DNA of 64,000 nucleotides, from the NCBI GenBank assembly GCA_965240325.2, contig OZ251236.1, positions 992,001 through 1,056,000 of the forward strand, written 5' to 3'. The DNA comes from Rebecca billardiae RCC1528. Its lineage: Eukaryota > Protista > Haptophyta. Positions within the stretch are counted from its first letter, which is position 1. Every line of letters begins with the position of its first letter. Of the stretch, positions 1 to 54,698 are shown piece after piece. A program made the position numbers and the translations under genes. The notes beneath the pieces are model-generated. The model was given only the letters and a program-made list of their open reading frames with translations, ran no database searches and was not told the origin of the DNA.

Positions 1-1628
1 TGAACCGCGTGTGGAGACGCGGCCACGCTCAGCCGTCGGTTTTTGAGGTCGGCCGACGAGTCGACGGCCGTGAGCGGCTCATCCATGGCCGACTTCTCCT
101 TGGGCCTGAGGCCCACCTTTTGCAGAAGAGGCACGTACCACGGGGTGGTGCACACGTAGATGGCGCAGTATGTGAGCAGCCCGCCCACGACGCCGTTGGC
201 GATGGAGTAGGTGAGCGGCATGACGGCGATGGTCAGGTACGCTGGGAACGACTCATTGAACTCGTCCCAGTTCATCACGCCGGCAGGCCCCATCATGAGC
301 GCGCCTGCGGCGCGCGCACGGCGCGTGCAGACGGTGCCAGCGTACGACGCTCGTGAGCGTGCCTCCGCGCGTGGCGCAGGCGGGGCGCACGCGCCGCGCG
401 AGGCCCGCACCGACGATGATGAGCGCCGGCGCCGTCGCCGTGGGCGGCACCGCCGAGAAGATCGGGATGAAGAAGACCGCGAGCGCAAAGTAGCCGGCGA
501 TCACCAGCGCCGTCAGCCCCGTGCGCCCGCCGTCGGCAATGCCCGCGCACGTCTCGTTGGCGATGATGATCGGCGAGGTGCCGAGCACCGCGCCGGCGAT
601 CGTGCCTATGGCCGAGGCGAGGAAGGCGGCCGTCGAGCCCGGCAGCTTGTGCGTCACCGGGTCCACCAGCCCAGCCTGCAGCCCCGCGCCAAACTGCACG
701 CCCGCCGTGTCAAAGATAGCAACGAACAGGAAGGCGAGCGTGACCGGCACCGTCTGCTGCCACCGCTCCATGTAGCCGGCGAAGTCCATGTGGTTGAAGG
801 TGCCCTCGAAGGTGGGCAGCTCGACGACGCCGGAGGGCAGCGGCGAGAGGCCGGAGAACCACGAGACGCACGACGAGAGCACCACGCCGATCAGCATCGC
901 GCCTTGCACCTGGTGCACCGTGAGGATCGCGATCAGCAGCGTGGTCGCGACGCCGAGCAGCACGTGCATCGACGTCACGTCGCCGAGCGCGACGAGTGTC
1001 TCGTCGTTAGGCACGACCAGGCCGGTCATCCGGAAGCCGATGAACGCCTGGAAGAGCCCGATGCCCACGGTGATCGCGTGCTTGAGGTTGTGCGGCATGA
1101 TGGACTGGATCAGCGTCGACGCACCGCACGCCGACAGCAGCGCGAAGACCTGCGGCCGCGGCGGGCGAGCGGGAGGGGCCGCGGTGCGATGCGGCGCATG
1201 AGCGCAGCGCAGGCGGACGTGCGTACATCACGCAAGGCTTCGCATGCCGGGCGGGTGCTGCACGGGCTGCGCGCGACACCCACCACGCCATTCACGGCGC
1301 ACGCGGCGAGAGCAATGCCGTAGGACATGTTGTTGGCGACGCACACGCCAAACGCAAAGTAGGCGTTCAGGCCCATGCCGGGACCCAGGCCGAACGGCAG
1401 GTTGGCCACGAGCCCCACGAAGGTGCACGCGATGATCGCGCTCACGGCGGTCGCGGACGCCACGGGCCGGAACGGCATGCCCGAGCCGCTCAGGATGGTC
1501 GGGTTCACAAGCAGGATGTACGCCATCGTCATGAAGGTCACCGTCCCGGCACGGAATTCCGTGCCGATCGTGGTGCCGCGCTCGGTGAGTTTGAAGTACG
1601 CATCGAACTTTTCCGCGAGCCAGCTCAT
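1..1628 (-). CDS. azgA: AzgA/AZG-family (NCS2-like) purine permease; 3' end runs off the window
   Basis: Motifs TTIGTEFRAGTVTFMTMAYILLVNP, ANLPFGLGPGMGLNAYF, FDTAG, GGRTGLT, MPLTYSIANG. Exons 1628-1284, 1149-411, 304-<1. GT-AG introns 1150-1283 and 305-410 join the frames. Confidence 0.93.
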
Positions 1629-39338: not shown

Positions 39339-39616
39339 CAACATTCAGCAAGACGACGACCGCGCATCGTCTGATGATTGCGTGTCGCCAGATCGAAAGC
39401 GCGCGCAGAGGCAACGTTGAACGGTGTCGGTTGTGATGCTGACAATGATGGCTGCTGATATGCGACGCGATGATGACGATCATGACTTGATGCGACGACG
39501 ACGGCCGCCGGACGACGCGGGACCGGGTCCGGGACGCCCTTGGGGGCGCCATGCTACCGCCGATGGCGATCCTCGGGCAACGCCGGGCCGCGCGCTGCGA
39601 GCGCCCGGCTAAAGAG

Positions 39617-41076
39617 TCAGGCGCCGCGCCCCAACTGCTCGAGGATGGCAGCCAGCGGGCGGCGCGCACCGTCCGCGTTGCCGTCGGGGCAGCAGTCGTC
39701 GTCGGGCTCGATGCCGCCGAGCCACTGCACCCACCTGTACGCGACGGCGGGCCGGAGGTGGTGCGCGCGCACCGGCGCGCCGCCACCTGCCACGCGCGTC
39801 ACGCCGCGGGCGGGGCGCGTCGGCGTGAGCGCCGGTGGGCGGCGTGCGCGCGCGGCGCGACGCGACAACGGCGGGCGCGCGCGCGCGCGCACCGCGCGAG
39901 GCGGCGAGCAAGGCGCGGCAGTGCGGGAAGGTCTGGCCATCGTCGTCGTGGTCGATCGCGCCGAGCAGCTCCGCCGCGCGCACGCCGCCCTTCCCCTGCA
40001 CCGCCGTCACCGCCAGCAGGTGCACCGCCGGGTGATACGAGAAGACGAGACTGAGCTGCGCGCGCGAGCACAGCAGCTCGAGGCAGACGCACCGCTCGCT
40101 CGGCCGCAGCACGGCCGGCCACGCGTGGGCGGCGTGCGCGAGCGCGTCGGCGCACGGCACGATGCGCGCGCCCACGAGGGTCGAGCCCAGCTGCGCCGAG
40201 CCGAGCAGCACGCACGCGCGCGCGTGCAGCGTGTGCAGCGGGGGCTCGAGCAGGTCCGCGGCCCGCGCGTCGGCCGCGCCGCCGCCGCCGCCCTCCGACA
40301 CCGCCACGTGAGCTGACAGTGAGAGATACAAACGCAGCGGCGCGCTCGCAGAGAGGACGGCGTCGAGCTCGGGGTGCACGCGCTCGCGCGCGTCGAGCAG
40401 GCGCTGCCGCTTCGCCCGCGTCACGCCCACCTCCGCCGTGAGCGCGCCGATCCGCTCCTGCAGCTCGCGCCGCCGCCGCAGCTCGGCGGCCAGCCGGCGC
40501 AGCCGAACTTGCTTCTGGTCCACGGGTGTGGCGGCGGCGCCGCCCGCGGCGGACGGGTCGGCGGGGAGCGGCGCGAGGGCGTCCTCGTCGAGGGTGGTGA
40601 GCGCGGGGCCCGTCTCGCACGCCTCGATCTCGCGCGCGCACACCGCGCGCTCGAGCTGCAGCTCCTGCAGCTCGGAGGCGCGCGCGTCGAGCGCGCGCCG
40701 GCCCGCCTGCGAGCCGTCGTCCGCGCGCGCGAGCTCGGCGGCGAGCTTGCGGTCGGTCTGCGCGCAGGGCGGGATGGGGCGCAGGCGCGTGTGAGGGCTC
40801 ACGCCGCATGCCGCCCGGGCGGCGCCGGCGCACGTGGGCGCCGAGTCCCAACTTGCAGCGCGCCGAGCGCGCGAGCGCGCGCGCGCTGGGGCTGCGCTCT
40901 CACGCGAGCGCACGCGCGCGCGCTGCGCTGCGCGGCGCGGCGCCCACCTCCTTGAGCGCGACGAGCGATGCGCCCACTTTGGCGAGCAGCGCGCGCTGCT
41001 CACTCGCCGAGGCGCCCTGGCGCTTCGCGCGGAGGAGCGTGTCCGCGCTCTCGCGCGCGACGCGCACGGCATCCAT
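39617..41076 (-). CDS. THOC5: THO complex subunit 5 (FMIP family)
   Basis: Motifs LQELQLERAVCAREIEAC, RLRRLAAELRRRREL, LSASAPLRLYL, LLEPPLHTL, DDDGQTFPH, AYRWVQWLGG, all in THOC5 order. Introns 40758-40947 and 39787-39892. Confidence 0.82.
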
Positions 41077-41191
41077 GGTGCGAGCTCGTGCGAGCTCGCG
41101 CCGCGCAGCTCGAGAGCTGCGCCAAGCGAAAGCCAAGTGCCACGCGGCCGACAGCGCGCGCCGGCCATCCTGCGCCTGCCGCCGAGACGAC

Positions 41192-44100
41192 ATGGCGGAT
41201 GACGCCCGCGCGATGGAGGCGAGCCTGCGCGGCGTGCTGGCCGACGAGCAGCTGGACGAGCTGCGCGCCGCGCTCGCCCCCTTCTGCCTCGCCGAGCACG
41301 AGCTGCGCACGTGGCACCGCACCCTCCGCCCGACCAGCGCCGCTCTCGGGCCGCCGACCGCAGTCGCTCCGGGCCACGAGCTCGAGCTCGTGAGCGTGGT
41401 CGACGAGGAGGGCGCCGTGCTCGGCGGCGCGCACCTGCTGCGGTACGTGGAGGGCATGCGCCACGTGCCCAGCGGGCCGGGCGCCGCGGCTCGCGAGAAG
41501 CCCGCGGCCGCGTCGGGCGCGAAGCGCGGAGGCGGCGGCGCGGCGGAGGATGCGGCTGCGGCGCGCGCGCAGGCACTCGCCAGCGTGGCGTCGCCGCCGA
41601 TCACGCCGGTGCGCTTCGCGCGCGCGGGCGTCGGTATCGAGGCGCTGCTACGCGCGCTCCCGCTCGAGCCCGTCCACGCGCACGTCCGCTACGGCTACCG
41701 CTGGGCGTGCCCCGCAGGCGGCGAGGTTGTAGCGTTCCGCCGCTGCGCGCTCGGCCGCACCGGAGCGGAGCCGGGGGCGGAGGAGGTGGGCGCGGCGGTG
41801 GGCGCGGCGCCGGGCGCGGCGGCGCGCGCGGAGGCGGGCGCCGGGCGCCCCCGCCTCGCGCCGCGCGCCGACGCCCTCGGCGCGCCGCCGCCGCGCCATC
41901 AGCTTGTGCCTCTGCGCGCCCACACGTGGGAGGTGGAGGTGGTCGCGGCGGGCGGCGCGCTCGGCGCCGAGACCGACGGCGCTCGCGACGCGCGGCTGCG
42001 CGCGCAGGCGTCGCGGCTCGGCGCGCGCGTGCCGCCCGCCGCCGGGCTCGGCGCGCGCTGGCGGCGCGCGCTACTCCTGGGCGCGGCGTGTCCGCTGCAG
42101 CCGCCCGCGGCGCGCGGCGCGGCGCCCGCGACAGCCGGGACCGCCGCGTCGGCCGCGGCCGCGGCCGAGGCGGCGGCGCTCGGCGCGGCGGTGGCGGCGG
42201 CGCGGCGGGCGGAGGCGCGCCGCCTGCGCGCGCTGCAGGCCGCGCTGCTTCTCCGCGGCTTCGACGAAGTGTCGGTCCTTGCGCCCACCGAGTTTGGCGG
42301 CGGCGGCGGCGGCGGCGCGGATGCGTCTGCGCCGCCGGGCGCGGCCGGCGCGGCCGGCGCCGGCGCCGCGCTCGGCGCCGCGCCGCCGTCGGCGCTGACG
42401 TCGTGGGCGGAGCCGAGCGCGGCCGCGTTCGCGGCGGCGCTCACGCGCATGTGCGCCGGCGCGCAGCCGGGAGACACCCTCCTAGTCCTGGCGAGTACTC
42501 ACGGTACTTGGGTGCAGAGGGCGGGCGGGGGCGGCGCGCGCGGCGGCGCGGCGCGGCGCGAGCGCGGCGCGGACGGCGGCGCCGCCTGTGGTGGCGGTGG
42601 CGCGGACGGCGCGGAGCCGCAGACGGAGGTGGCGCCGACGGAGGCGATGGTGACGGAGGAGGGCCGCGCCGTCTCGGTCGGCGCGCGCGTGTCGGAGCTG
42701 CAGCTGCAGCTGCGCTTGGCCGCGGAATGGCACCCACCGCTTGACGAGGAGGAGGAGTGGGGCGTCGCCGCGTCCAACGGCCCGCGCCACCCGCCCGGCC
42801 ACCGGCACGCCGGGCAGCTGGTGACGGCCGCGCAGACGATCTCGAAAGGGCCGCTGCACGGCAAGAGAGTCGACGCGTGCCTCCGGCGCAAGGCGCGGCC
42901 GCCTCCGCTCGTCGGCGCGCGCCGCGCCATCCACGCTGAGCTGCGCGGACTCGGCGTGAGCGTGGGCGAGGGTAAGACCGCCGCCATCGACACCGCCGCC
43001 GCCACGCCGCCCGCCGCCGACGCGCCGCCCGCCGCCGCCGCGCCGCCGACGACGACGCCGACGCCGCCGACGACGGAGACGCCGCCGGTTGGGTCGGGCG
43101 GCGCGGAGGGCTCGGCCGCGGAGGACTCGACGCCGCTTTCCCTCGCGCAGTGCGCGGCGCACTGCGCCACGGCCGCGACGCTGCTGGAGCTCCGGACCCG
43201 GGACCGTTCGTACGAGGCGGAGCAGCTGGGCGAATACCGCACCGAGCGCGCGCGGCTGGAGGCGCGCGCGGGCGCGGCCGAGGCGGAGATGACGGCGGAG
43301 GCGCTGGGCGCGGCGCGCGGCGAGCCGCCGAGCAAGAAGGCGCGCAAGGCGGCCAAGGACGCGGGCGACGACGCCGCAGACCCGGACTACGACCCCTCGG
43401 CGGGTGCGGGCGGGGGGGCCAGCAAGGTACGTAGCGCACCCGCCGGCGCCGCCAAGTCGGCCGGTGCCGCCGCCGCCGCCGCCGGCGGCAGCGCGGGCGG
43501 CGTGAGTGCGGACGAGCTGGCTCGGAGGCTGGCGCCGCACAAGAGCGCGCTCGCGGCGACAGACGAGCGTCTCCGCAAGCTCGACGAGCGCAGCGCCCTG
43601 CTCGCTCGGGTGGCGCAGCGGCATGGGCGCGCGCTGCGCCGGCTGCGGGCGTTCGTGCGCGGAGGCGCGGCGGGCGCGCGCTGCGCGCTGCTCACCGTCG
43701 ATGCCCGCGGCGTCGTCACCGCCGCGTCGGCGCGGGCGTGCGCGCTCGCCGGCCGGCCGCGCTCCCAGCTCGAGGGCGCCGTGCTCGCACCGCCGCTCTG
43801 CGCGCCCGAGCTCGCCGACGCGACGCGCCGCGCCGCCGCTGAGGGCAAGCCTGCCAAGCGAGGTCACCCCTTTGGCTCGGCTGACGGCTCCGACGCGGCC
43901 GCGTCGGGTGCAGGCGGCGGCGGCGGCGGCGCAGCGCTGCTCACGCCGCGCCCCGCGAAGGACTACGCCGGCGCGGACGCGGGCGAGGCACTGCTCACCG
44001 ACGACGGCGCGCTCGACGCCCTCGGCGACTTTGGCGCCGCGGCGGAGCGGCTCCGACGGCTGCGGCTGCCAAAGACGCTTGCGGTGTCGCGCTGGCGCGT

Positions 44101-45031
44101 GCTCAGCACGGCGGCCAAGCACGCAGAGGCGGCGCGCGCGCGGCCGGCGCCGCGCCGCGCGGCGCACATGCGCGCGTACGTGCGCGCCGCGCACGCGCTC
44201 GCGCTGATTGTCGAGGCGCAGCGCGCGGCGGACGCGGAGGCGGGCGCGTCGGACGACGAGGACGAGGCGCGCGCGCACGACGCAGCCGCCGCGGCCGAGG
44301 CCTGGGGTGCCCTCCTCGCGGACGCTGACAAACTCGACGCCGAGGCGGCGGCGGGGAAGGCGCCCTCCGCGGAGCTGGCCGAGCGCGTGCGCGCGCGGCA
44401 CGCGCTGCTCGTCGCCGCGCCCGCGCCCGCCATCTACCTGAGCACAGGGCAGCCGGTCGGCGGCCGCGGCGGCGGCGCGGCGGCCGCGGCGGTTGGCCTG
44501 GCGGGCGGTGGCGCCGCCGGCTCGCGGCTGAGCTCCGCGGAGGCGGCGGCGGCCGCCGCCGGGTGCGAGCGGCTCGCCCTGTGCGCCGAGGCGCGAGCGG
44601 CGGCGGGCGGCGGCGCGCCGAGCAGCGCCGCCGCCGCACACGCCGCGCCCAACCCGCTCGCGGACGCGCTCGGCTGCCTCGACACGCGCGCCCGATGCAC
44701 CCTCCTCCTCGACTCAGTGCACGCGGGGCCGGCGCTCGGGCCGCTGCTGGATGGCGACGCGAGGCTGGCGCGCGGCGCGGCCGTGAGCGTGCTGAGCGCG
44801 CGGCTCGACGACCCGCTGCGCTCGGGCGCGGGCGCGGGCCCCGAGTGGGCGGGCGCGCTCGCCGACGCGCTCGCCGCCGAGCTCGGCACGCCGGGCGTCG
44901 ACGACGCCGACGCGGCCGAGCTGCGCGCGCGTCTGGACGCGAGGCTAGGCGCGCGGCTTGGCCTCGGCGTGGCGCTCGAGCAGAGCGCGCGCGCGCGCGG
45001 CGCGGCGGGGCACCAGCCCGCGATGCCGTGA
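41192..45031 (+). CDS. Multidomain protein: Med18-like N-terminus + degenerate metacaspase fold interrupted by a coiled-coil/PAS-like insertion
   Basis: Med18-like MEASLRGVL..EQLDELRAAL..FC, HLLRYV, HAHVRYGYRW, TWEVEVVA. Metacaspase-like RRALLLG, EPSAAAF..AL..MCAGAQPGDTLLVLASTHG, CTLLLDSVHAG, VSVLSA, GALADAL. Probable in-frame intron 41786-41902. Further introns are possible. Confidence 0.7.
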   Translation: MADDARAMEASLRGVLADEQLDELRAALAPFCLAEHELRTWHRTLRPTSAALGPPTAVAPGHELELVSVVDEEGAVLGGAHLLRYVEGMRHVPSGPGAAAREKPAAASGAKRGGGGAAEDAAAARAQALASVASPPITPVRFARAGVGIEALLRALPLEPVHAHVRYGYRWACPAGGEVVAFRRCALGRTGAEPGAEEVGAAVGAAPGAAARAEAGAGRPRLAPRADALGAPPPRHQLVPLRAHTWEVEVVAAGGALGAETDGARDARLRAQASRLGARVPPAAGLGARWRRALLLGAACPLQPPAARGAAPATAGTAASAAAAAEAAALGAAVAAARRAEARRLRALQAALLLRGFDEVSVLAPTEFGGGGGGGADASAPPGAAGAAGAGAALGAAPPSALTSWAEPSAAAFAAALTRMCAGAQPGDTLLVLASTHGTWVQRAGGGGARGGAARRERGADGGAACGGGGADGAEPQTEVAPTEAMVTEEGRAVSVGARVSELQLQLRLAAEWHPPLDEEEEWGVAASNGPRHPPGHRHAGQLVTAAQTISKGPLHGKRVDACLRRKARPPPLVGARRAIHAELRGLGVSVGEGKTAAIDTAAATPPAADAPPAAAAPPTTTPTPPTTETPPVGSGGAEGSAAEDSTPLSLAQCAAHCATAATLLELRTRDRSYEAEQLGEYRTERARLEARAGAAEAEMTAEALGAARGEPPSKKARKAAKDAGDDAADPDYDPSAGAGGGASKVRSAPAGAAKSAGAAAAAAGGSAGGVSADELARRLAPHKSALAATDERLRKLDERSALLARVAQRHGRALRRLRAFVRGGAAGARCALLTVDARGVVTAASARACALAGRPRSQLEGAVLAPPLCAPELADATRRAAAEGKPAKRGHPFGSADGSDAAASGAGGGGGGAALLTPRPAKDYAGADAGEALLTDDGALDALGDFGAAAERLRRLRLPKTLAVSRWRVLSTAAKHAEAARARPAPRRAAHMRAYVRAAHALALIVEAQRAADAEAGASDDEDEARAHDAAAAAEAWGALLADADKLDAEAAAGKAPSAELAERVRARHALLVAAPAPAIYLSTGQPVGGRGGGAAAAAVGLAGGGAAGSRLSSAEAAAAAAGCERLALCAEARAAAGGGAPSSAAAAHAAPNPLADALGCLDTRARCTLLLDSVHAGPALGPLLDGDARLARGAAVSVLSARLDDPLRSGAGAGPEWAGALADALAAELGTPGVDDADAAELRARLDARLGARLGLGVALEQSARARGAAGHQPAMP

Positions 45032-46762: not shown

Positions 46763-49700
46763 TCAGACGTGCCGGCTGATCTCGGCCAGCACCCCCTCCA
46801 CGTCCGCGCACGCGCGCCGAGGCGCCGTGCCCGCGCCGTGCGCGGGCGGCTGCTTCTCCTGCTGCGCCTTCTGCTCGGCCGCGGCCGGACGGCCGTGCTC
46901 GGCGGCCGCCGCGCGCGCCACGCCGCCGAGCGAGGCGCGGCGCGGGCTGCCGGCTGGCGCCTCGCCTGCGGGTGGCGTGGTCGCCGCGCGCGAGAGCGTC
47001 GCGGAGGGCGGCACGCTGAGCGGGCCGCCGTCGGCGCCGCCGCCCGCGCGCGGCTCGGCGCGGCGCTCCGCGCTCGCCGCCGCCGCCAGCCGGCTTCCCA
47101 GGCTGGCGCCGCACGCCGGCAGCGTGGCGGAGGCGGGCGTGCGCGCCGAGCGCTCCCTCGTGTGCGTCCGCACGCGCTCCGACAGCGCCAGCGTCTCGCC
47201 CTCGAGGCGGGAGGCGGTCCGGATGCCGTCCATCGTCACCTGCCTCGGCGCGCGCGCGCGGGCGGCGTCGGGCGGGTCGAGCGAGCGGTGCGCGGCGCGT
47301 GAGCGCGGCGCGCACCGCTGCGTGCGCTGCGCGCGCGTCACCGCCGCGCCGCGCGGAGGCGCCGCGCCGCGCGCGCGGCGCTCATCGGCCGCGCGCGCAC
47401 GCATCCCGCGCGCGCACACACACCTGCGAGAACGAGCGGCTGAGCACCTCGTGCAGCGACGCCACCTCCCCGGCGCGCGCCTGCGCCGCAGCCGCCACCG
47501 CGTCACGCGACGACTCAAGTTCCCGCACTCGCCGCTCGAGCGACTGCGAACCCCCGATGCGCGGTGGCCGGGAGAGGGGGCGCGGGGAGAGGGAGGCAGG
47601 TGGGAGGGAGCGCGGCGGCGAGGGGCCGGAGCGAGGCGCGGTTGCCGGCACAGGGGGCGGGAGGCGGAGGGAGCGCGGCGGCGCGCGGGCGGGCTCGTCG
47701 CGTGCGTGTGAGCAGGGGCACGCGGCGCGGCGGCGGCGTGCGCGCCGCTCGCCTGCCCACCGCGCCGCACCGCACCGCACCGCGCCGCGCGCGCTCGCCG
47801 CGCCGCGCCGCGCCGCGCGGGCGCGCGCGCCGCACCGCAACGGTCTCTCGGGCGGCGGAGAGGGCGGCGGCGTCGGCATTGGCGCGCGCCTCCGCGGCCA
47901 ATCTGCGCTCGGCCGCGTCGGCGTCCGCGCGCTCGAGCGCTGCGCGCAGCCGCGCCTTGTCCGCCGCCTCGGCGCGCACCTCGTCCGAGCGGCGGCGCGC
48001 CTCCTCCGCCGCGGCGTCCGCGCGCCGCCGCTCCGCGTCCGCCTGTGCGCGCGCCGCGGCCGCGGACGCCTCCGCCTCCTCGCGCGCGCGCGCCACCGCG
48101 GCCTCCGCCTCCCTCCGCGCGCCGTCGAGCGCTGCGCTCGCCTCGGCGCCGCGCGCCACGAGCGCGGCGTCGTGCGCGCGCGACGCCGCGTCCGCGCGCG
48201 CGCGAGCCTCGCTCAGCTCGGCGCGCAGCGGCGCGGTGGCGGTGGCGACGGCGGTGGCTGCGGCTCGCTGCGCCTGCGCGGTGGCGCGGTGGCGGTGCGA
48301 CGGCGCGGACGCGCGCGGACGCGCGCGGACGCGTGTAGACACGGCGGGTGCGGGTTACGATGCGGCGCGGCGCGGCGGGCGCGGGGCCCGGCCGGCCCCG
48401 AGCCTCGCGCCACGCGTGCCACGCGTCACCACACGCGCGCGCCGCGCGCGGCGGGCGGGCGGCGCGCCGCACACACACACCTCCTCAGCGGCGCGCGCGC
48501 CCGCGGCCTCGGCCGCGCGCGCCGCCTCGCGCGAGCGCGCCTCCGCCGCGCGCGCCTCCGCCGCCGCCGCGCTCGCGGCGTCGCGCGCGCTCGCCTCGGC
48601 GGCGCGCGCGGCGCTCGCCTCGGCCTCCGCGCTCGCGCGCGCCTCCGCCTCCGCGCCCAGCTCGGCGCGCAGCCGCTCCAGGTCCGAGCGCGCCCTCTCC
48701 GCCTCGCGCGCCGCCGCCGCCACCTGCCGTCGGACTGCCGCCGCGGCAGCTTCACCGTCCGCGCGCGCGCGCTCGGCCGCGCGCGCGGCGGCGCCCTCGA
48801 GCGCGGCGCGCAGCGCGGCGGAGAGCGCGCGCGCGGCGCCGCTGCCGTCGCCCACGAGGATGCCGCCGTACTCCACGTCGCCGCCCGCGCCGCGCTCGCC
48901 CGCCTCTGCGCCCGCGCCCGCCGCGCCTTCGGCCGCGCCCGCCGCCGGCCGCGCGGCCGGCGGCGGCGCGCCGCGCGTCGCGCGGCACAGCCGATCGAGA
49001 CACGCGCCCTCGGCGGCGGCTGCGCCGAGGTGTGGCGAGAGCTCGGCGCGGATCGCGCCGAGCGCGCGCGCCGCCTCGCTCGTCGCGCGCGCCGCCTGCT
49101 CGCGCGCCGCCTCCGCCGCGTCCGCCCTCGCGTCCGCGGCGGCGCCGTCGGCGCGCGCCGCGTCCGCGTCCGCGCGCGCAGCGGCGGCGCGCGCCGCCGC
49201 CTCATCCGCTGCGAGCGTCGCGGCGGCGCGCTCGGCCTGGAGCGCCGCCGCCGCGTCGGAGCCCTCGCGCGCGCTCATCGCGGCGGCGGCGGCGGCGGCG
49301 CGCGCCTCCGCGAGCGACTGCGCCGCGGCGCGCAGCTCCGCCGCTCGGCGGGTCGCATCAGCGTCGGCGGTGGCCGCGCGCGCCTCGGCCGCGGCCGCGC
49401 GCGCCTCCGCCTCCGCCGCCCTCGCCTCCTGAGCCGCCGCGCGCTCGCGCCACGCGGCGGCCTCGCCGAAGCCGCCGCCGCCGGCGCGCACCGCGGCGGA
49501 CGCCGCCGCCGCGGCCGAGGCGGCGGCGGCGGCGTCGGCGCCCCAGCCCAGCGGCGGCGCCGTCGGCGCGGGCGCGGCGGCAGGCGCGCGCCCCTCGACG
49601 CCCGCCGCCGCGACCGCCGCCTCAGATGCGCGGCGCTTGGGCGAGCGCGCCCGCTGCTGGGGCGGCGGGTGCGCGGCGGCGGTGGCGCCCGCCGCGCCGA

Positions 49701-52700
49701 GCGCGGCGGAGGCCGCCGACGCCGCCGCGCGCGCCGCCGCCGCCTCGTCGCGCGCGCGCCGCGCCTCCGCCTCCGCCGCGCGCCGCGCGTCGCGCTCAGC
49801 ACCGACCGCGCGCGCAGCGGCGCGCGTGTCACGAGCGTGCCGCTCTGCGAGCGCTCGGACGGCGGCGGCGCCGTCGGCCGCGGCCTCTTGCAGCGCGGAG
49901 GTGGCCTGCGCGCGCAGCGCGCGCAGCGCGCGGTGCAGCTCCGCCGCGTGCGCGCGCACCGCCGAGCGCGCGCGCGCGCGCGTCTCGCGCAGCGCTGCGC
50001 GCGCGCGCGCCGCCGCCGCCTCGGCCGCGGCCGCGCGGCCGCGCGCGTGGGCGAGCGAAGCAGCGGCCGCGCGCATCGCGTCGCCGCCCGCCTCCGCCTC
50101 GGCCTCGGCGGCGCGCGCGCGGCGCAGCGCGGCGCCGATGTGCTCGGCGGCGCCGCCGCCCTCGCTCCCGCCACCGCCGTACACCTCGTGCCCGTGCTGG
50201 CCGCCGTATCCAACGCCCCCGCCGCCTCCGCCGCCGCGCGCGTCGCCCGCGCCGCGCGCGCCCGCCGCCGGCTGCGCCGCGCCGCCGCCACTGGCGGCGC
50301 CGCCGCCGGCGCGCGGCCAGCCGCCGTCGCCGCCAGTGCCGCCCGCGTCGTACGCATGGTGGTGCGCGTGGTACGCGCCGCCGCCGCCGCCGCCACCCGG
50401 CGGCATGCCGAACGGCGGCGGCGGCGGCGGCGGCGGCGACGGCGCGCGCGGCGGCGGCGCGGCGGCCGCGGCGGCCGCCGCGCGCCGCGCCGCCGCCGCC
50501 TCCGCCTCCGCCACCGCCGCGCGCGCCTCGGCCGCCGCCGCGCGGCGCTCGGCGCGCGCGAGCGCGTCGGCGAGCTCGGCCTCGCCCGCGCGCGCGTGCC
50601 ACGCCTCCTCCGCCGCCGCCTCCGCCCCGCGCTCCGCCTCCGCCGCCCTCGCGCGCTGCCGCCACTCGCCGGCCGCGCCCGCGGCGCGCGCCGCGTCGGC
50701 CGCGTGCGCGTCGAGCGACCGACGAGCGGACTCGGCCGCGGCCGCGGCGGCCTCGGCGGCGGCCTCGGCGTCGGCGCGCGCGGCGGCCTCGTCCTCGAGG
50801 CGCGCGCGCAGCGCCATCACGATCGAGCGCGCCTCCTCCAGCTCCTCGCCCAGCGCGCCGCGCTCCGCCGAGCGCTGCGCCGCCGCCTCTGCCGCCGCGT
50901 CCGCCGCCGCCTCGGCGCGCGCCTCCGCGTCCGCGCGCGCGCCGTCCGCGTCCGCCGCGGCGCGGCGCGCGCCGTCGAGCTCGGCGCGCGCGGCGTCGAG
51001 CTGCTCGGCGTGCGCGGCGAGCAGCGCGCGCTCGCGCGCGGCGAGCGCGCCGCGCGCCGCCGCCTCGTACTCGCTCAGCGCCGCCTTCGACTCGCCGACG
51101 AAGCGCGCCTCGAGTGCAGTCAGCTGCGCGTCCGCGCGCGCGTCCGCGGCGGCGGCGGCGTCGCGCGCCGCGGAAGCATCTGCGCTCAGCCGCGCGGCGG
51201 CGGAGTGCGCGGCGGCGCGCTCGCGCGCGAGGAGCTCGGCGGTCTGCTGCTCCAGCTGCGCGCGCTCCGCCTCGCGCGCGCCGTGCGCCGCGCCCACCGC
51301 CTCGCGCGCCTCATCCAGCTGACGGGCCGCGAGCGCTGCCGCCGCGCCCAGCGCTGCGCACAGCGCCCCAACCGCCTCCGCCGCGGCCGCGGCCGCGGCG
51401 GGCGCGGGCGCGGGCGTGGGCGTGGGCAGGTGTGCGGCGGCGGCGCGCGGCGGCGAGGGCAGCCCGCCGCCCTGGCGCGCGCGCTGCCCCGGCGGCGTGC
51501 CGCGCCCGCCGAGTGCTGCGGACAGCGGCGAGCCGAGCCCAGCGCCGAGCGAGCCGCGCGCGCGCTGCTGCGCCGCCGGCGTGGCGGTGGCGGCGGCGGC
51601 GGCGCCGCGCCCGCCGCCGTCCGCCGCCGCGGCCGATGGCACGCCGTCGAGGGCCGCGGCCACCGCCGCCTCGGCGACGGCCTCGAGGTCCGCGCTCTCA
51701 CCACCCGCCCCGCCCACATCGCCGCCGCCCAGCCCGTGTGCCCTCAGCGCGGACGCGGCGCCGCCGCCATCGCCCACGCCGCCGCCGCCGCCGCCCATCA
51801 CCAAGCCCGCCGGCGCGGCGGCGCCGCCGCCGCCACCGCCGAGCGCGGCGTCGAGCAGCGCCTGGAGGCGCGCGGCGGAGAGCTCCTCGCCCGCGCGGAC
51901 GAGGCTGCGCGCGCGCGGCGCGTCCAGCGTCGACGCGCGCGGCTCGCCCTCCTCCACGCCCTCCGCCGCCGTCGCGAGCGGCGCCGCCGCCGTCGCGAGC
52001 CGGCGCGCGGCCGCCGCCGCCGCGGTTGCAAGCGCTGTGCGCTCGGCGCGCGCTCGCTGCAGCGCGCCCGCCGCGGCGGCGGTGGCGGCGTGCGCGGCGC
52101 GCGCGGCGGCGGCGGCGGCCTCCTCGGCCAGCCGCCCCTCGGCCGCCTCGCGCGCCTCGCGCACCGCGCCCTCCGCCTCCGCCTCCGCCGCGGCCGCGCG
52201 GCGCGCGGCGGCGTCGGTGGCGGCGCTGGCCTCGGAGCGCGCGGCCGCGAGCGCCGCCGCCGTCGCCTCCGCCTCGGCGCGGCGCGCGGCCGCGCCCTCG
52301 TCGGCGTCGGCGCGCGCGCGTGCCGCGCGCGCGTCGGCGTCCTCGAGCGCCGCGCGCATCGCGCCGAGCTGCGCGCCCAGTGCCGCCGCCTTCGCCTCCG
52401 CCGCATCGGCGCGCGAGCGCTGCTCAGAGGCGGCGGCGTCGGCATCGGCGCGCGCCGCCGCCTCGCGCGCCGCCTCGGCCGCGCTCGCGCTCGCCGCGGC
52501 GTCGGCGGCGACGAGCTGGTCGAGCTTGGCCGCGAGCGCGGCGTACTGCGCGCGCGCCTCGTCGCGCGCCGCCTCCGCCTCCGCGCGCGCGCGCTGCGCC
52601 GCCTCCGCGCCCTCGCGCGCCGCGGCCGCGTCGGCGGCCGCGGCGGCGCGCGCCGCGTCCGCGCCGTCGCGCGCGGCAAGCGCGCTCGCTTCGCGCACGC

Positions 52701-53625
52701 GGCTCTCGGCGAGCTCGTCGCGCCAGCGCTCGGCGTCGGCCTTGGCGGCGGAGAGCGCGGCCTCGCGACCGAGCACGTCCGCCGTCGCCGCCTCCAGCCG
52801 CGCGTCGCGCCCCTCCAGCGCCGCCGCCATCGTGGTCAGCTCGTCACGAGCGCGCGCCGCGTCTGCGCGGGCGTCGGCGAGCGCGGCCGCGGCGCCGCGC
52901 GAGGGCTCGAGCTCGGCGCGCGCGGCGTCGCGCTCGGCGCGCGCGGCGTCGCGCTCGGACGCGGCGCGCTTCAGCGCGCCGGACAGCTCGAGCACGCGCG
53001 CCTGCAGCCCGTCCAGCTGCGAGCGCGCCTCCGTCGCCTCACGCTCCGCAGCGCCGCGCGCCGCCTGCGCGCGGTCGCAGCCTTCGCGCGCGCGAGAGAG
53101 GTCGTCGGCGAGGCGCGGCACGGCGCCCTCGCGCTCGGCGTCGCGCGCGCGAAGCACCTCCACCTCGCGCGCCGCCGCCTGCGCCGCCGCCTGCGCCGCA
53201 GCCAGCTGGCGCGCCTGCGCGCCGAGCGCGGCCTCCGCCTCGGCGCTTAGCGCCGCCGCCACCACCTCGCGCGCGCGCTCGAGCGCGTGGCCCGCCGTGG
53301 CGGGGTCGGCGCGCATGGCGTGGAGGGCCTCATCCGCCGCGACGATGTGCGTGATCTCGTCCAGCCGGCGGCTCAGCGACGAGAGCCGCTCCTCGTACGC
53401 GTGCGTGAGCGCGACAATCATCGGGTGATGCGACTCGTCCGCGCCGCCGCCGCCGCCGCCGCCGAGCGAGTGCGACGCGCGGAGCTGGAGGCCGCTGGGC
53501 ATCGCGAAGCCGCGCGTACTCGGGTACCCGGGCGTCTGCGGCGTGCCGTACGCGCCCGCCGGCGCCGCGCCCGGCGTGTGCGCCGGCGGCGCGTGCACGT
53601 CCCACGCCGTGGTGCCGCCAAGCAT
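46763..53625 (-). CDS. Very large Ala/Glu/Arg-rich coiled-coil protein (~2060 aa)
   Basis: Continuous heptad-like ORF. Exons 53625-48481, 48273-47836, 47543-47424 and 47239-46763 are joined by GT-AG introns in phase 0. Confidence 0.78.
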
Positions 53626-53720
53626 GCCGTGCGGCCGAAGCTCAAACCGTGCCGCGTTCGAACGAAAGTGCGGGTTGGTGCAACTGTGCATCCGGACCAG
53701 CGGCAACACTCATCAGATCC

Positions 53721-54698
53721 ATGGCTGCTGCGCCGCCGCCAGACGGCACCTTCGACTGGCACGCGTCGCTGCGCAGCTGCGAGGCGCTGCGCGACGTGGT
53801 GCTGCCGGCAGCGCACGGGCTCGCCCCGTCGGCGCGCGTGCTCGTGCTCGGCTGCGGCGACTCCACGCTCTCGGAGGACGTGCTCGCCGCGGGCGGATGC
53901 GCGGAGGTGACTTCGATCGACACGGAGCCGCGCTGCATCGCGCACATGCGCGCGCGCACCGCGGGCGTGGCGGCGCTGCGCTGGGAGGTGCTCGACGCGA
54001 CCCACGCCGGTGGCCTCCTCGCGCCGCTCGGCGGAGCGGCCCCCTTCGACCTCGTGCTCGACAAGGGCACGCTGGACGCGATCGTGTGCGCAGGCGACGA
54101 CGCCGCGTGCCGAGCCGCGTTCAACGCGCGGCGCGCGCTCGCGCCCGGCGGCGTGCTGGCGGTGGTGACGCTGCACGTGGACAGCAAGGTGCGCCGATTC
54201 CTCGACGCGCCCGCCGGGCCCGGCGCCCGCGGCGCGTACGCCCTCGGCTGGGCGAGCGTGCGCGCGACACCGCTGCGCGCGCCGCCCGCCTTCAGCGGAC
54301 AAGCGCTCGTGTGCGTGGCACCGTCCGCGGCGGAGGGGGCGGAAGGGAGCGCGGGCGGGTGGGAGGGCGACGCGCGGTTTGACGCGTACGCGCGCGCCGT
54401 CGCGGGCGCGGCGCACGCCGACGAGACGCCGCTGCTCACGCCGCAGCGCGAGGCGGAGCTCAGGCTGGCGTGGGGCATGCGCGCGCTCGGCGCCGCCTCG
54501 CCCGCGCAGGCGCGCGTGCCGCTGCGCGAGGCGCATGCGCTCATCTTCAGCGCGGCCGAGCGCGCGGAGTACGCGCTCGAGGACTTCGAGGCGGACGTGG
54601 CGGCGTGGCGCGCGTCCCAGCGCGCGCCCGACCGCGGCGCGTCCGACGCCGGGCTCACCGCCGACGAGGCGGTGGCGCTGGTGCATGCGATCGAGTGA
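53721..54698 (+). CDS. Class I SAM methyltransferase, METTL13/EEF1AKMT4-like
   Basis: Motifs TFDWH, VLVLGCGDSTLSE, FDLVLDKGTLDAIVC, RALAPGG. Confidence 0.88.
   Translation: MAAAPPPDGTFDWHASLRSCEALRDVVLPAAHGLAPSARVLVLGCGDSTLSEDVLAAGGCAEVTSIDTEPRCIAHMRARTAGVAALRWEVLDATHAGGLLAPLGGAAPFDLVLDKGTLDAIVCAGDDAACRAAFNARRALAPGGVLAVVTLHVDSKVRRFLDAPAGPGARGAYALGWASVRATPLRAPPAFSGQALVCVAPSAAEGAEGSAGGWEGDARFDAYARAVAGAAHADETPLLTPQREAELRLAWGMRALGAASPAQARVPLREAHALIFSAAERAEYALEDFEADVAAWRASQRAPDRGASDAGLTADEAVALVHAIE

Follow-up and report, generated by a model that had tools for sequence, protein, structure and literature searches.

Introduction

Med18 is a subunit of the Mediator head, of which it forms the movable jaw, and few parts of the RNA polymerase II (Pol II) machinery are as conserved and as compact as the Mediator head subunits. 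Caspase folds retained as non-catalytic scaffolds are exemplified by the N-terminal caspase-like domain of Raptor, by c-FLIP and by the pseudo-protease domain of separase, all of them contiguous domains; to our knowledge, none of the three is attached to a Mediator subunit, and none has a detectable sequence relation to the protein described here. Metacaspases of types I and III, as well as metacaspase-like proteases that lack p10, have been described from phytoplankton including haptophytes, and none of the domain orders given there includes an interrupted p20 or a fusion to Mediator (Choi and Berges 2013, PMC3734836). In the present work a stretch of 64,000 nucleotides from the haptophyte Rebecca billardiae RCC1528 (contig OZ251236.1, positions 992,001 to 1,056,000; hereafter the window) was analysed with respect to one long forward-strand gene, which an earlier note on this DNA had proposed to encode a Med18-like domain fused to a dead metacaspase, the latter split by a long PAS-containing insertion. 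On balance, our analysis favours reading this locus as a real, intron-less nuclear gene for a protein of 1279 residues that combines a Med18 fold, a degenerate split C14 (caspase-like) domain and a PAS-like domain.

Two blocks of a proposed caspase-like domain

To obtain a C14 reference, a collection of bacterial and archaeal genomes was scanned with a DNA pattern encoding DSCHSG, and 47 non-redundant bacterial open reading frame (ORF) segments that also carried an upstream HG were kept and aligned; 45 of these 47 belonged to Pfam Peptidase_C14. A hidden Markov model (HMM) of the 47 domains was run unfiltered (hmmsearch --max) over all 1279 residues. The best match in the protein was the proposed His block (15.8 bits, up to 19.2; P 4e-7), aligned to HMM positions 87-123, which comprise helix alpha2, strand beta3 and the His-Gly pair. 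This score was reached by none of 2000 shuffles (1000 global, maximum 6.6 bits; 1000 local, maximum 12.5 bits). Comparison of the block with the C14 alignment by hhalign gave a probability of 90.9% (E 1e-6), and a position-specific scoring matrix (PSSM) that used the protein's own composition as background scored it at 24.4 bits, versus -3.4 bits for the runner-up and with 0 of 20000 shuffles reaching this level. As judged from these profile matches, a C14-derived His block is very probably present. The top ESM Atlas matches of residues 286-445 were likewise all Peptidase_C14 (PF00656; 0.81), a result taken as a lead and not as evidence.

The same unfiltered run also placed HMM positions 152-176 on residues 1156-1180. 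This is the sole second caspase-like site of the protein, and it follows the His block, the order that the fold requires, with 739 codons between His437 and Val1176, the number counted in the earlier note. Its PSSM scored residues 1164-1181 at 9.8 bits, versus -2.6 bits for the runner-up, a value matched by 24 of 20000 shuffles (p ~1.2e-3), and hhalign placed the Cys-site columns on the DSVHAG block (P 4e-4, probability 33.5%). The catalytic Cys of the D-[SA]-C-H-S-G block is not kept, since the sequence reads DSVHAG, with Val1176 in its place. Because Val replaces the nucleophilic Cys, protease activity appears unlikely, and the caspase-like domain is most likely catalytically dead. The interpretation of the DSVHAG block as the displaced Cys-site strand of a caspase-like domain is modestly favoured by its sequence.

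Several results speak against a split caspase fold. The C14 HMM was ascertained on exact DSCHSG and hence favours matches of the DS.H.G type. Pfam Peptidase_C14 (PF00656) found no match up to E 10 in the whole protein or in six sub-segments of it. In PSSM scans for beta1, beta2, beta5 and alpha5, the motifs RRALLLG, GFDEV, VSVLSA and GALADAL were not picked out, other sites being preferred for the p10 blocks. Single-sequence AlphaFold2 modelling of residues 286-1279 returned a mean confidence (predicted local distance difference test, pLDDT) of 44.8 with helix and coil only and zero strands; the PAS fold was missed as well, so that this model lends no support to a caspase sheet. The beta1-beta2 region was not significant against the C14 HMM after composition correction, and NCBIfam and PADLOC searches gave nothing useful for the caspase-like region.

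The predicted protein consists of Ala to 27.5%, Gly to 12%, Leu to 10% and Arg to 9.5%, and short motifs built of these residues carry little weight because such residues dominate the protein. RRALLLG, VSVLSA and GALADAL were accordingly rejected as independent evidence, being made of the commonest residues and not singled out by the composition-corrected PSSMs; against the composition-matched background, no sites other than the His and DSVHAG blocks stand out. Of the caspase-fold elements that had been listed in correct order before, the His block and the degenerate Cys-site block with its Val were thus borne out, whereas the p10-like motifs and RRALLLG were not distinguished from chance, RRALLLG being nevertheless conserved in a relative.

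A rival explanation holds that all that exists of the caspase domain is a relic of its N-terminal half, that DSVHAG and the tail are chance look-alikes, and that the protein consists of Med18, a decayed p20 fragment and a long, largely disordered PAS-bearing extension, with no split fold. The C-terminal 131 residues score just 2.2 bits against the C14 HMM, a value matched by 42 of 2000 shuffles, and the modest hhalign probability at the Cys site, the failure to single out the p10-like blocks, the absence of a sheet in the AlphaFold2 model and the bias of the HMM to DSCHSG all agree with this explanation. On the other hand, few composition-matched shuffles reach the score of the 18-residue Cys-site block, which stands 12 bits above the next window of the scan. 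The C-terminal region is also the second-best locus of the HMM after the His site, and its sub-alignments follow the right HMM order, with the Cys site downstream of the His block and HMM positions 241-269 aligning afterwards on GALADAL (-1.0 bits). We regard chance resemblance of the C-terminal half as somewhat unlikely, and it is the alternative to the split caspase-like domain that survives best.

Med18-like fold of the N-terminus

An exhaustive phmmer search with residues 1-1200 against 1.84 billion representative proteins returned seven matches in total, none of them the window protein itself and two of which align to the N-terminus: a protein of 264 amino acids (P0001; E 4e-25, aligned over residues 8-285) and a metagenome fragment of 140 amino acids (P0002; E 8e-13, aligned over residues 3-110). 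P0001 is the hypothetical protein T492DRAFT_879128 of Pavlovales sp. CCMP2436. The assembly of CCMP2436, GCA_026770615.1, is given as that of a Pavlovales haptophyte (bioRxiv 10.1101/2025.06.04.657860). When the full protein, its N-terminal domain or the profile of the three aligned sequences (the protein and its two relatives) served as query, word-indexed searches found no further relatives beyond P0001, and no relatives were found among JGI metagenome contigs with either the C-terminal half or the full protein.

The earlier note had assigned an N-terminus of ~240 amino acids to the Med18/Srb5 pattern, and this assignment gained support from fold and language-model comparisons and from no sequence HMM. 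In an ESM Atlas feature search with residues 1-290, the nearest entries were Med18 clusters (score 0.93, 196-197 of 256 features), which made up 15 of the 40 matches, as compared to 0.84 for Med20 and 0.82 for CYTH. An AlphaFold2 model of the N-terminus was built from the three-sequence alignment, and in a Foldseek search with it the top 9 PDB matches were all Mediator entries (prob 0.84-0.99), of which at least seven were Med18 chains. The best matches were Med18 chains of Chaetomium, human, S. pombe and S. cerevisiae (prob 0.97-0.99, E 7e-3 to 2e-2). Re-ranking of the Foldseek matches by VIA gave Z 7.0-7.5 for the Med18 chains. A VIA scan of 48,161 representative chains that was independent of Foldseek placed 5n9j_X, 6xp5_R and 7emf_R at ranks 1-3 (Z 7.6, 7.5 and 7.0, with 139-162 residues aligned), as against at most 6.1 for CYTH/TTM and at most 3.6 for unrelated chains. 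Chain R of 6xp5 and 7emf we take to be MED18, from the letter-for-number chain-naming convention of these entries, and 3c0t_A is identified as Med18 by the title of its entry and the length of the chain. In the ESM Atlas shape search, the highest TM-score by query belonged to a Med18 cluster (0.42, 163 residues aligned), while CYTH/TTM and VTC folds head the service's own order.

Other observations count against a Mediator identity of the N-terminus. The AlphaFold2 model is of low confidence (pLDDT 49.6; 60-73 in core segments), a Z of 7-8 is 'middling' on VIA's own scale, and the open beta-barrel of the Med18 type is a fold common to CYTH/TTM enzymes. Pfam Med18 (PF09637) gave no match up to E 10 for the whole protein, N-terminal pieces, P0001 or P0002, and the three-sequence N-terminal profile found no Med18 among PDB sequences. 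Searched against PDB sequences, the whole protein, either half of it and that profile returned noise only (RuBisCO, PilQ, a designed helical protein).

These points may be accommodated by a second rival explanation, according to which the N-terminus merely shares the Med18/CYTH open barrel, the protein has a lineage-specific signalling or scaffold role unrelated to Mediator, and another gene encodes the real Med18. In its favour stand the missing Med18 HMM matches, the CYTH/TTM and VTC folds that lie only ~1.5 Z units lower and lead the Atlas shape-search order, and the restriction of detectable relatives to Pavlovales. Against it, fungal and human Med18 chains rank first in three structure searches, and the language-model score is higher for Med18 than for CYTH. 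The alignment shows E-A-x-L-R-G at the N-terminus to be invariant across the protein and its relatives, and this motif resembles the N-terminal strand of Med18 and not the ExExK motif of TTM enzymes. We consider this second explanation clearly unlikely. With a TTM/CYTH enzyme being the less likely assignment on both the Z values and the language-model scores, the N-terminal domain is, by the modelled fold, likely Med18-like, the related CYTH/TTM barrel being the alternative.

PAS-like domain in the intervening segment

The Pfam PAS_4 profile (PF08448) matched inside the segment between the His and Cys-like blocks at 23.9 bits with the whole protein and at 29.7 bits (E 8e-7) with the isolated segment, in both cases above the gathering cut-off of 23.1. 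An independent indication was provided by the five remaining phmmer matches, all of them bacterial multi-PAS histidine kinases (P0003-P0007), which align to residues 810-905 with E values of 8e-13 to 4e-4. The PAS-like stretch noticed earlier from the letters was hence corroborated by two lines of comparison. The match is confined to profile positions 6-77 of 110, as a Gly/Ala run breaks up the distal third of the domain.

Apart from PAS, no family match was obtained in the intervening segment with Pfam, NCBIfam, PADLOC or ESM Atlas, and an ESM Atlas search with the C-terminal 989 residues gave no usable match. Two long predicted helices, the first ending in a basic stretch that resembles a nuclear localization signal (NLS) and the second immediately preceding the PAS-like domain, are the only confident elements of the AlphaFold2 model of residues 286-1279 (Table 1).

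As a side observation, Pfam and NCBIfam detect PAS alone in this protein, and the Med18 and C14 signals emerged only from fold comparison, from language-model searching or from custom HMMs run unfiltered. Proteomes of such biased composition are probably under-annotated in a systematic manner.

Conservation in Pavlovales sp. CCMP2436

The locus of P0001 in Pavlovales sp. CCMP2436 (L001, scaffold MU631570.1) is intron-rich, lower in GC content than the window and broken by assembly gaps. A tblastn search with the window protein revealed colinear matches on one strand of it (Table 1). In a six-frame translation of L001, the best match of the C14 HMM was again the GDELLLVACTHG exon, carrying THG. 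The WRRALLL segment (WRRALLLSGA) is situated just upstream of exon 2 of P0001, and the THG exon lies ~400 bp past the annotated stop. Since conserved colinear coding segments fall just outside its exons, the 264-residue T492DRAFT_879128 model is a truncated one. Apart from this, the exon end 'ggctacgacgaggtacac' is duplicated ~115 bp downstream in L001 (11270 and 11385).

The question whether relatives share the fusion, raised by the earlier note, receives a partly affirmative answer: the Med18-like, WRRALLL, RG[FY]DEV and THG segments are colinear in CCMP2436, and the PAS-like match is weaker. The colinear matches thus indicate that the Med18-like domain and the caspase-like N-terminal half are parts of one gene in a second Pavlovales species, and the downstream PAS-like segment of L001 probably belongs to the same gene as the Med18-like and THG exons. 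L001 ends, with assembly gaps, before the C-terminal half, which detracts from the case for a split domain, and the conservation seen in the second Pavlovales genome covers the N-terminal two-thirds of the arrangement.

A third rival explanation states that the long ORF is not one protein, either because Med18 and PAS are encoded by separate transcripts or because an in-frame intron removes the insert. The annotation of the relative as a protein of 264 amino acids and the intron-rich structure of its gene are compatible with this; against it, the R. billardiae frame runs over 3.8 kb without a stop, a GC dip or loss of codon phase, and the annotated model of the relative is truncated, with conserved segments found outside of it in the same order. 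A division of the frame between two products, or removal of the insert, is therefore rated as highly unlikely.

Coding status of the reading frame

The single stop-free frame reported earlier extends from 40808 to 45031 (+), and all of the motifs described in it were located at their given positions. The start codon ATG at 41192 (MADDARAMEASLRG) is consistent with the N-termini of both detectable relatives, P0001 and P0002, in the alignment. The GC content ranges from 62 to 87% across the window in 2-kb bins and amounts to ~80% over the gene region. In the shuffled region, the median length of the longest stop-free frame was 526 codons, and the longest of all reached 1280. The stop-free frame alone is weak coding evidence, because shuffles at ~80% GC reach such lengths and long antisense ORFs exist.

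The codon positions were more informative. In 150-nt windows, the GC content at third codon positions (GC3) in the frame of the gene was 0.82-0.96 in every window from ~41250 to 45000, and that at second positions (GC2) was usually the lowest of the three (0.50-0.88). The gap between phases was narrowest in windows 42450-42599 and 43800-43949, which correspond to Gly-rich runs. No intron-like GC dip or loss of codon phase was found inside the coding sequence over the whole 3.8 kb. The periodicity ends abruptly at 45000, and beyond this point the GC content drops to 50-60% without phase. Codon periodicity is the decisive evidence that 41192-45031 is coding. A chance ORF in GC-rich DNA, which might be suspected where DNA of this composition readily yields long stop-free frames and antisense ORFs of 655-719 amino acids overlap the gene, is effectively refuted by the strong codon periodicity together with the homologues (E 4e-25) and the above-threshold PAS match, and its probability is practically negligible.

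Two antisense stop-free frames overlap the gene. The frame at 42482-44641 (-), of 719 amino acids, shows no separate coding periodicity; that at 39609-41576 (-), of 655 amino acids, is real only across 39609-40850. Both illustrate that in this genome the length of an ORF does not count as evidence.

Proposed role at the Mediator head

Should the composite reading hold, the Med18 part would dock with Med8C and Med20 within the Mediator head, as in other eukaryotes, and the C-terminal extension might form a non-catalytic docking or regulatory platform off the head module. The PAS-like domain could mediate a regulated contact, either protein-protein or ligand-dependent, and the basic PPSKKARK patch would be consistent with a nuclear protein. 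We infer a single polypeptide in which both caspase halves would pack together, as well as membership in Mediator and any sensing; a direct coupling of a signal to Pol II is purely conjectural. The full proposal is that a Pavlovales Med18 permanently gained a pseudo-caspase platform split by a PAS module, through which a sensed ligand, redox or protein signal would directly influence the contacts between Mediator and Pol II, no separate transcription factor being needed, and in this complete form it is quite improbable.

Neighbouring gene and positions of the features

The upstream gene, on the minus strand at 39609-40850, encodes a homologue of THOC5/Fms-interacting protein (PF09766, E 4e-13). 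The codon periodicity at 39900-40800 belongs to the minus strand, that is, to the THOC5 homologue, and the signal upstream of ~41100 is of the minus strand. The THOC5 homologue and the Med18-like gene are arranged head-to-head with ~340 bp between their coding regions and probably share a bidirectional promoter. No THOC5 was seen beside the orthologue in the Pavlovales sp. CCMP2436 locus, where an assembly gap adjoins. Elsewhere in the window, 48001-54000 comprises 6 kb at 81-87% GC, in which the GC skew is negative and the AT skew strongly so, the most extreme composition of the window.

Table 1. Positions of the gene, its predicted domains and motifs in the window, and of the corresponding segments in locus L001 of Pavlovales sp. 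CCMP2436 (CDS, coding sequence; AF2, AlphaFold2).
Feature	Residues	Position	Strand	Evidence
Whole CDS, single exon, 1279 codons + stop	1-1279	41192..45031	+	Unbroken GC3 periodicity without intron-like dip; ATG matches N-termini of relatives
Med18-like domain, with low-complexity loops at ~89-142 and ~188-226	1-285	41192..42046	+	phmmer P0001; Atlas clusters; fold matches of AF2 model
Proposed caspase beta1-alpha1-beta2: WRRALLLG (288-297) and LRGFDEVSVL (~354-363), Ala/Gly runs between		42047..42415	+	Conserved and colinear in L001 11074-11289
RRALLLG	291-297	42062	+	Motif position
C14 His block, His437-Gly438 kept	409-445	42416..42526	+	C14 HMM; shuffles; PSSM; hhalign; conservation in L001
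AQPGDTLLVLASTHG	424-438	His437 at 42500	+	Motif position
Intervening segment of ~710 residues: Gly/Ala/Pro low complexity, long helices, PAS-like domain, helical region	446-1155	42527..44656	+	Periodicity maintained throughout
Long predicted helix, ending in NLS-like PPSKKARK	~651-728	43142..43375	+	AF2 single-sequence, model numbering 366-423/430-443, pLDDT 70-86
PPSKKARK, NLS-like	712	43325-43348	+	Motif position
Long predicted helix immediately before PAS-like domain	~773-827	43508..43672	+	AF2, model numbering 488-542, pLDDT up to 90
PAS-like domain, profile positions 6-77 of 110	831-900	43682..43891	+	Pfam PAS_4; phmmer; weak L001 match
PAS-like stretch of the earlier note	833-862		+	Motif position
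Cys-site-like block, RCTLLLDSVHAGP, Val1176 at position of catalytic Cys	1156-1181	44657..44734	+	C14 HMM 152-178; PSSM; hhalign
LLLDSVHAG	1171-1179		+	Motif position
C-terminal tail, proposed p10-like VSVLSA + GALADAL	1182-1279	44735..45028	+	HMM 241-269 on GALADAL, -1.0 bits
VSVLSA	1198		+	Motif position
GALADAL	1221		+	Motif position
Med18-like exon		L001 9983-10699		tblastn E 4e-34
GGWRRALLLSGA...LRARGYDEV, counterpart of RWRRALLLGAA...LRGFDEV		L001 11074-11289		tblastn E 0.03
FLSELTSLCAATRAGDELLLVACTHG, counterpart of FAAALTRMCAGAQPGDTLLVLASTHG in the window protein		L001 12428-12514		tblastn E 1e-3
CAALVVDADSLVLAASAR, PAS-like		L001 19667-19765		tblastn E 0.02
RLRLP and RAAxxRAY segments		L001 20998, 21264		tblastn, weaker

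Comparison with known systems

Literature searches that combined Med18 with metacaspase, and Mediator or Med18 with haptophyte, including full text, found no description of such a protein. The unusual architecture appears to be conserved in at least two species, as far as remote homology of moderate confidence in an extremely biased sequence can indicate. If true, a Med18 with an extension of 1000 residues composed of a dead caspase and PAS would represent new regulatory wiring into a core co-activator, and a caspase fold that tolerates ~700 inserted residues between the His strand and the Cys strand would be unusual both as a domain insertion and in the evolution of pseudo-enzymes. In practical terms, the annotation of T492DRAFT_879128 is truncated, and standard HMMs miss all of these domains but PAS in proteomes so extremely rich in GC and Ala.

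In comparison with Med18/Srb5 (PF09637; 3c0t_A, 6xp5_R, 7emf_R), the N-terminal domain shares the modelled fold, has Med18 as its nearest language-model clusters and is of comparable core size once the two low-complexity loops are subtracted. It differs in giving no sequence-profile match and in being followed by ~1000 extra C-terminal residues, the matched Med18 chains being 167-256 residues long.

With metacaspases and bacterial Peptidase_C14 domains, the protein has in common the His-Gly block, including the helix and strand that lead up to it (..AQPGD.LLV..S.HG), followed in correct order by a D-S-x-H-x-G block where DSCHSG would stand. Unlike them, it carries Val for Cys, a His-to-Cys distance of 739 residues versus ~57 in the 47-domain alignment and a Med18-like fusion, and its p10 is not demonstrable. 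The bacterial multi-PAS histidine kinases resemble residues 810-905 at ~30% identity to their PAS repeats, whereas the window protein has a single PAS copy and no kinase or other output domain.

The likeness to the scaffolds of Raptor, c-FLIP and separase would consist in a caspase-derived fold that a large regulatory protein has kept, presumably for binding and not for proteolysis. Each kind of module, Med18-like, C14-like and PAS, is thus already known, and it is their combination that is new.

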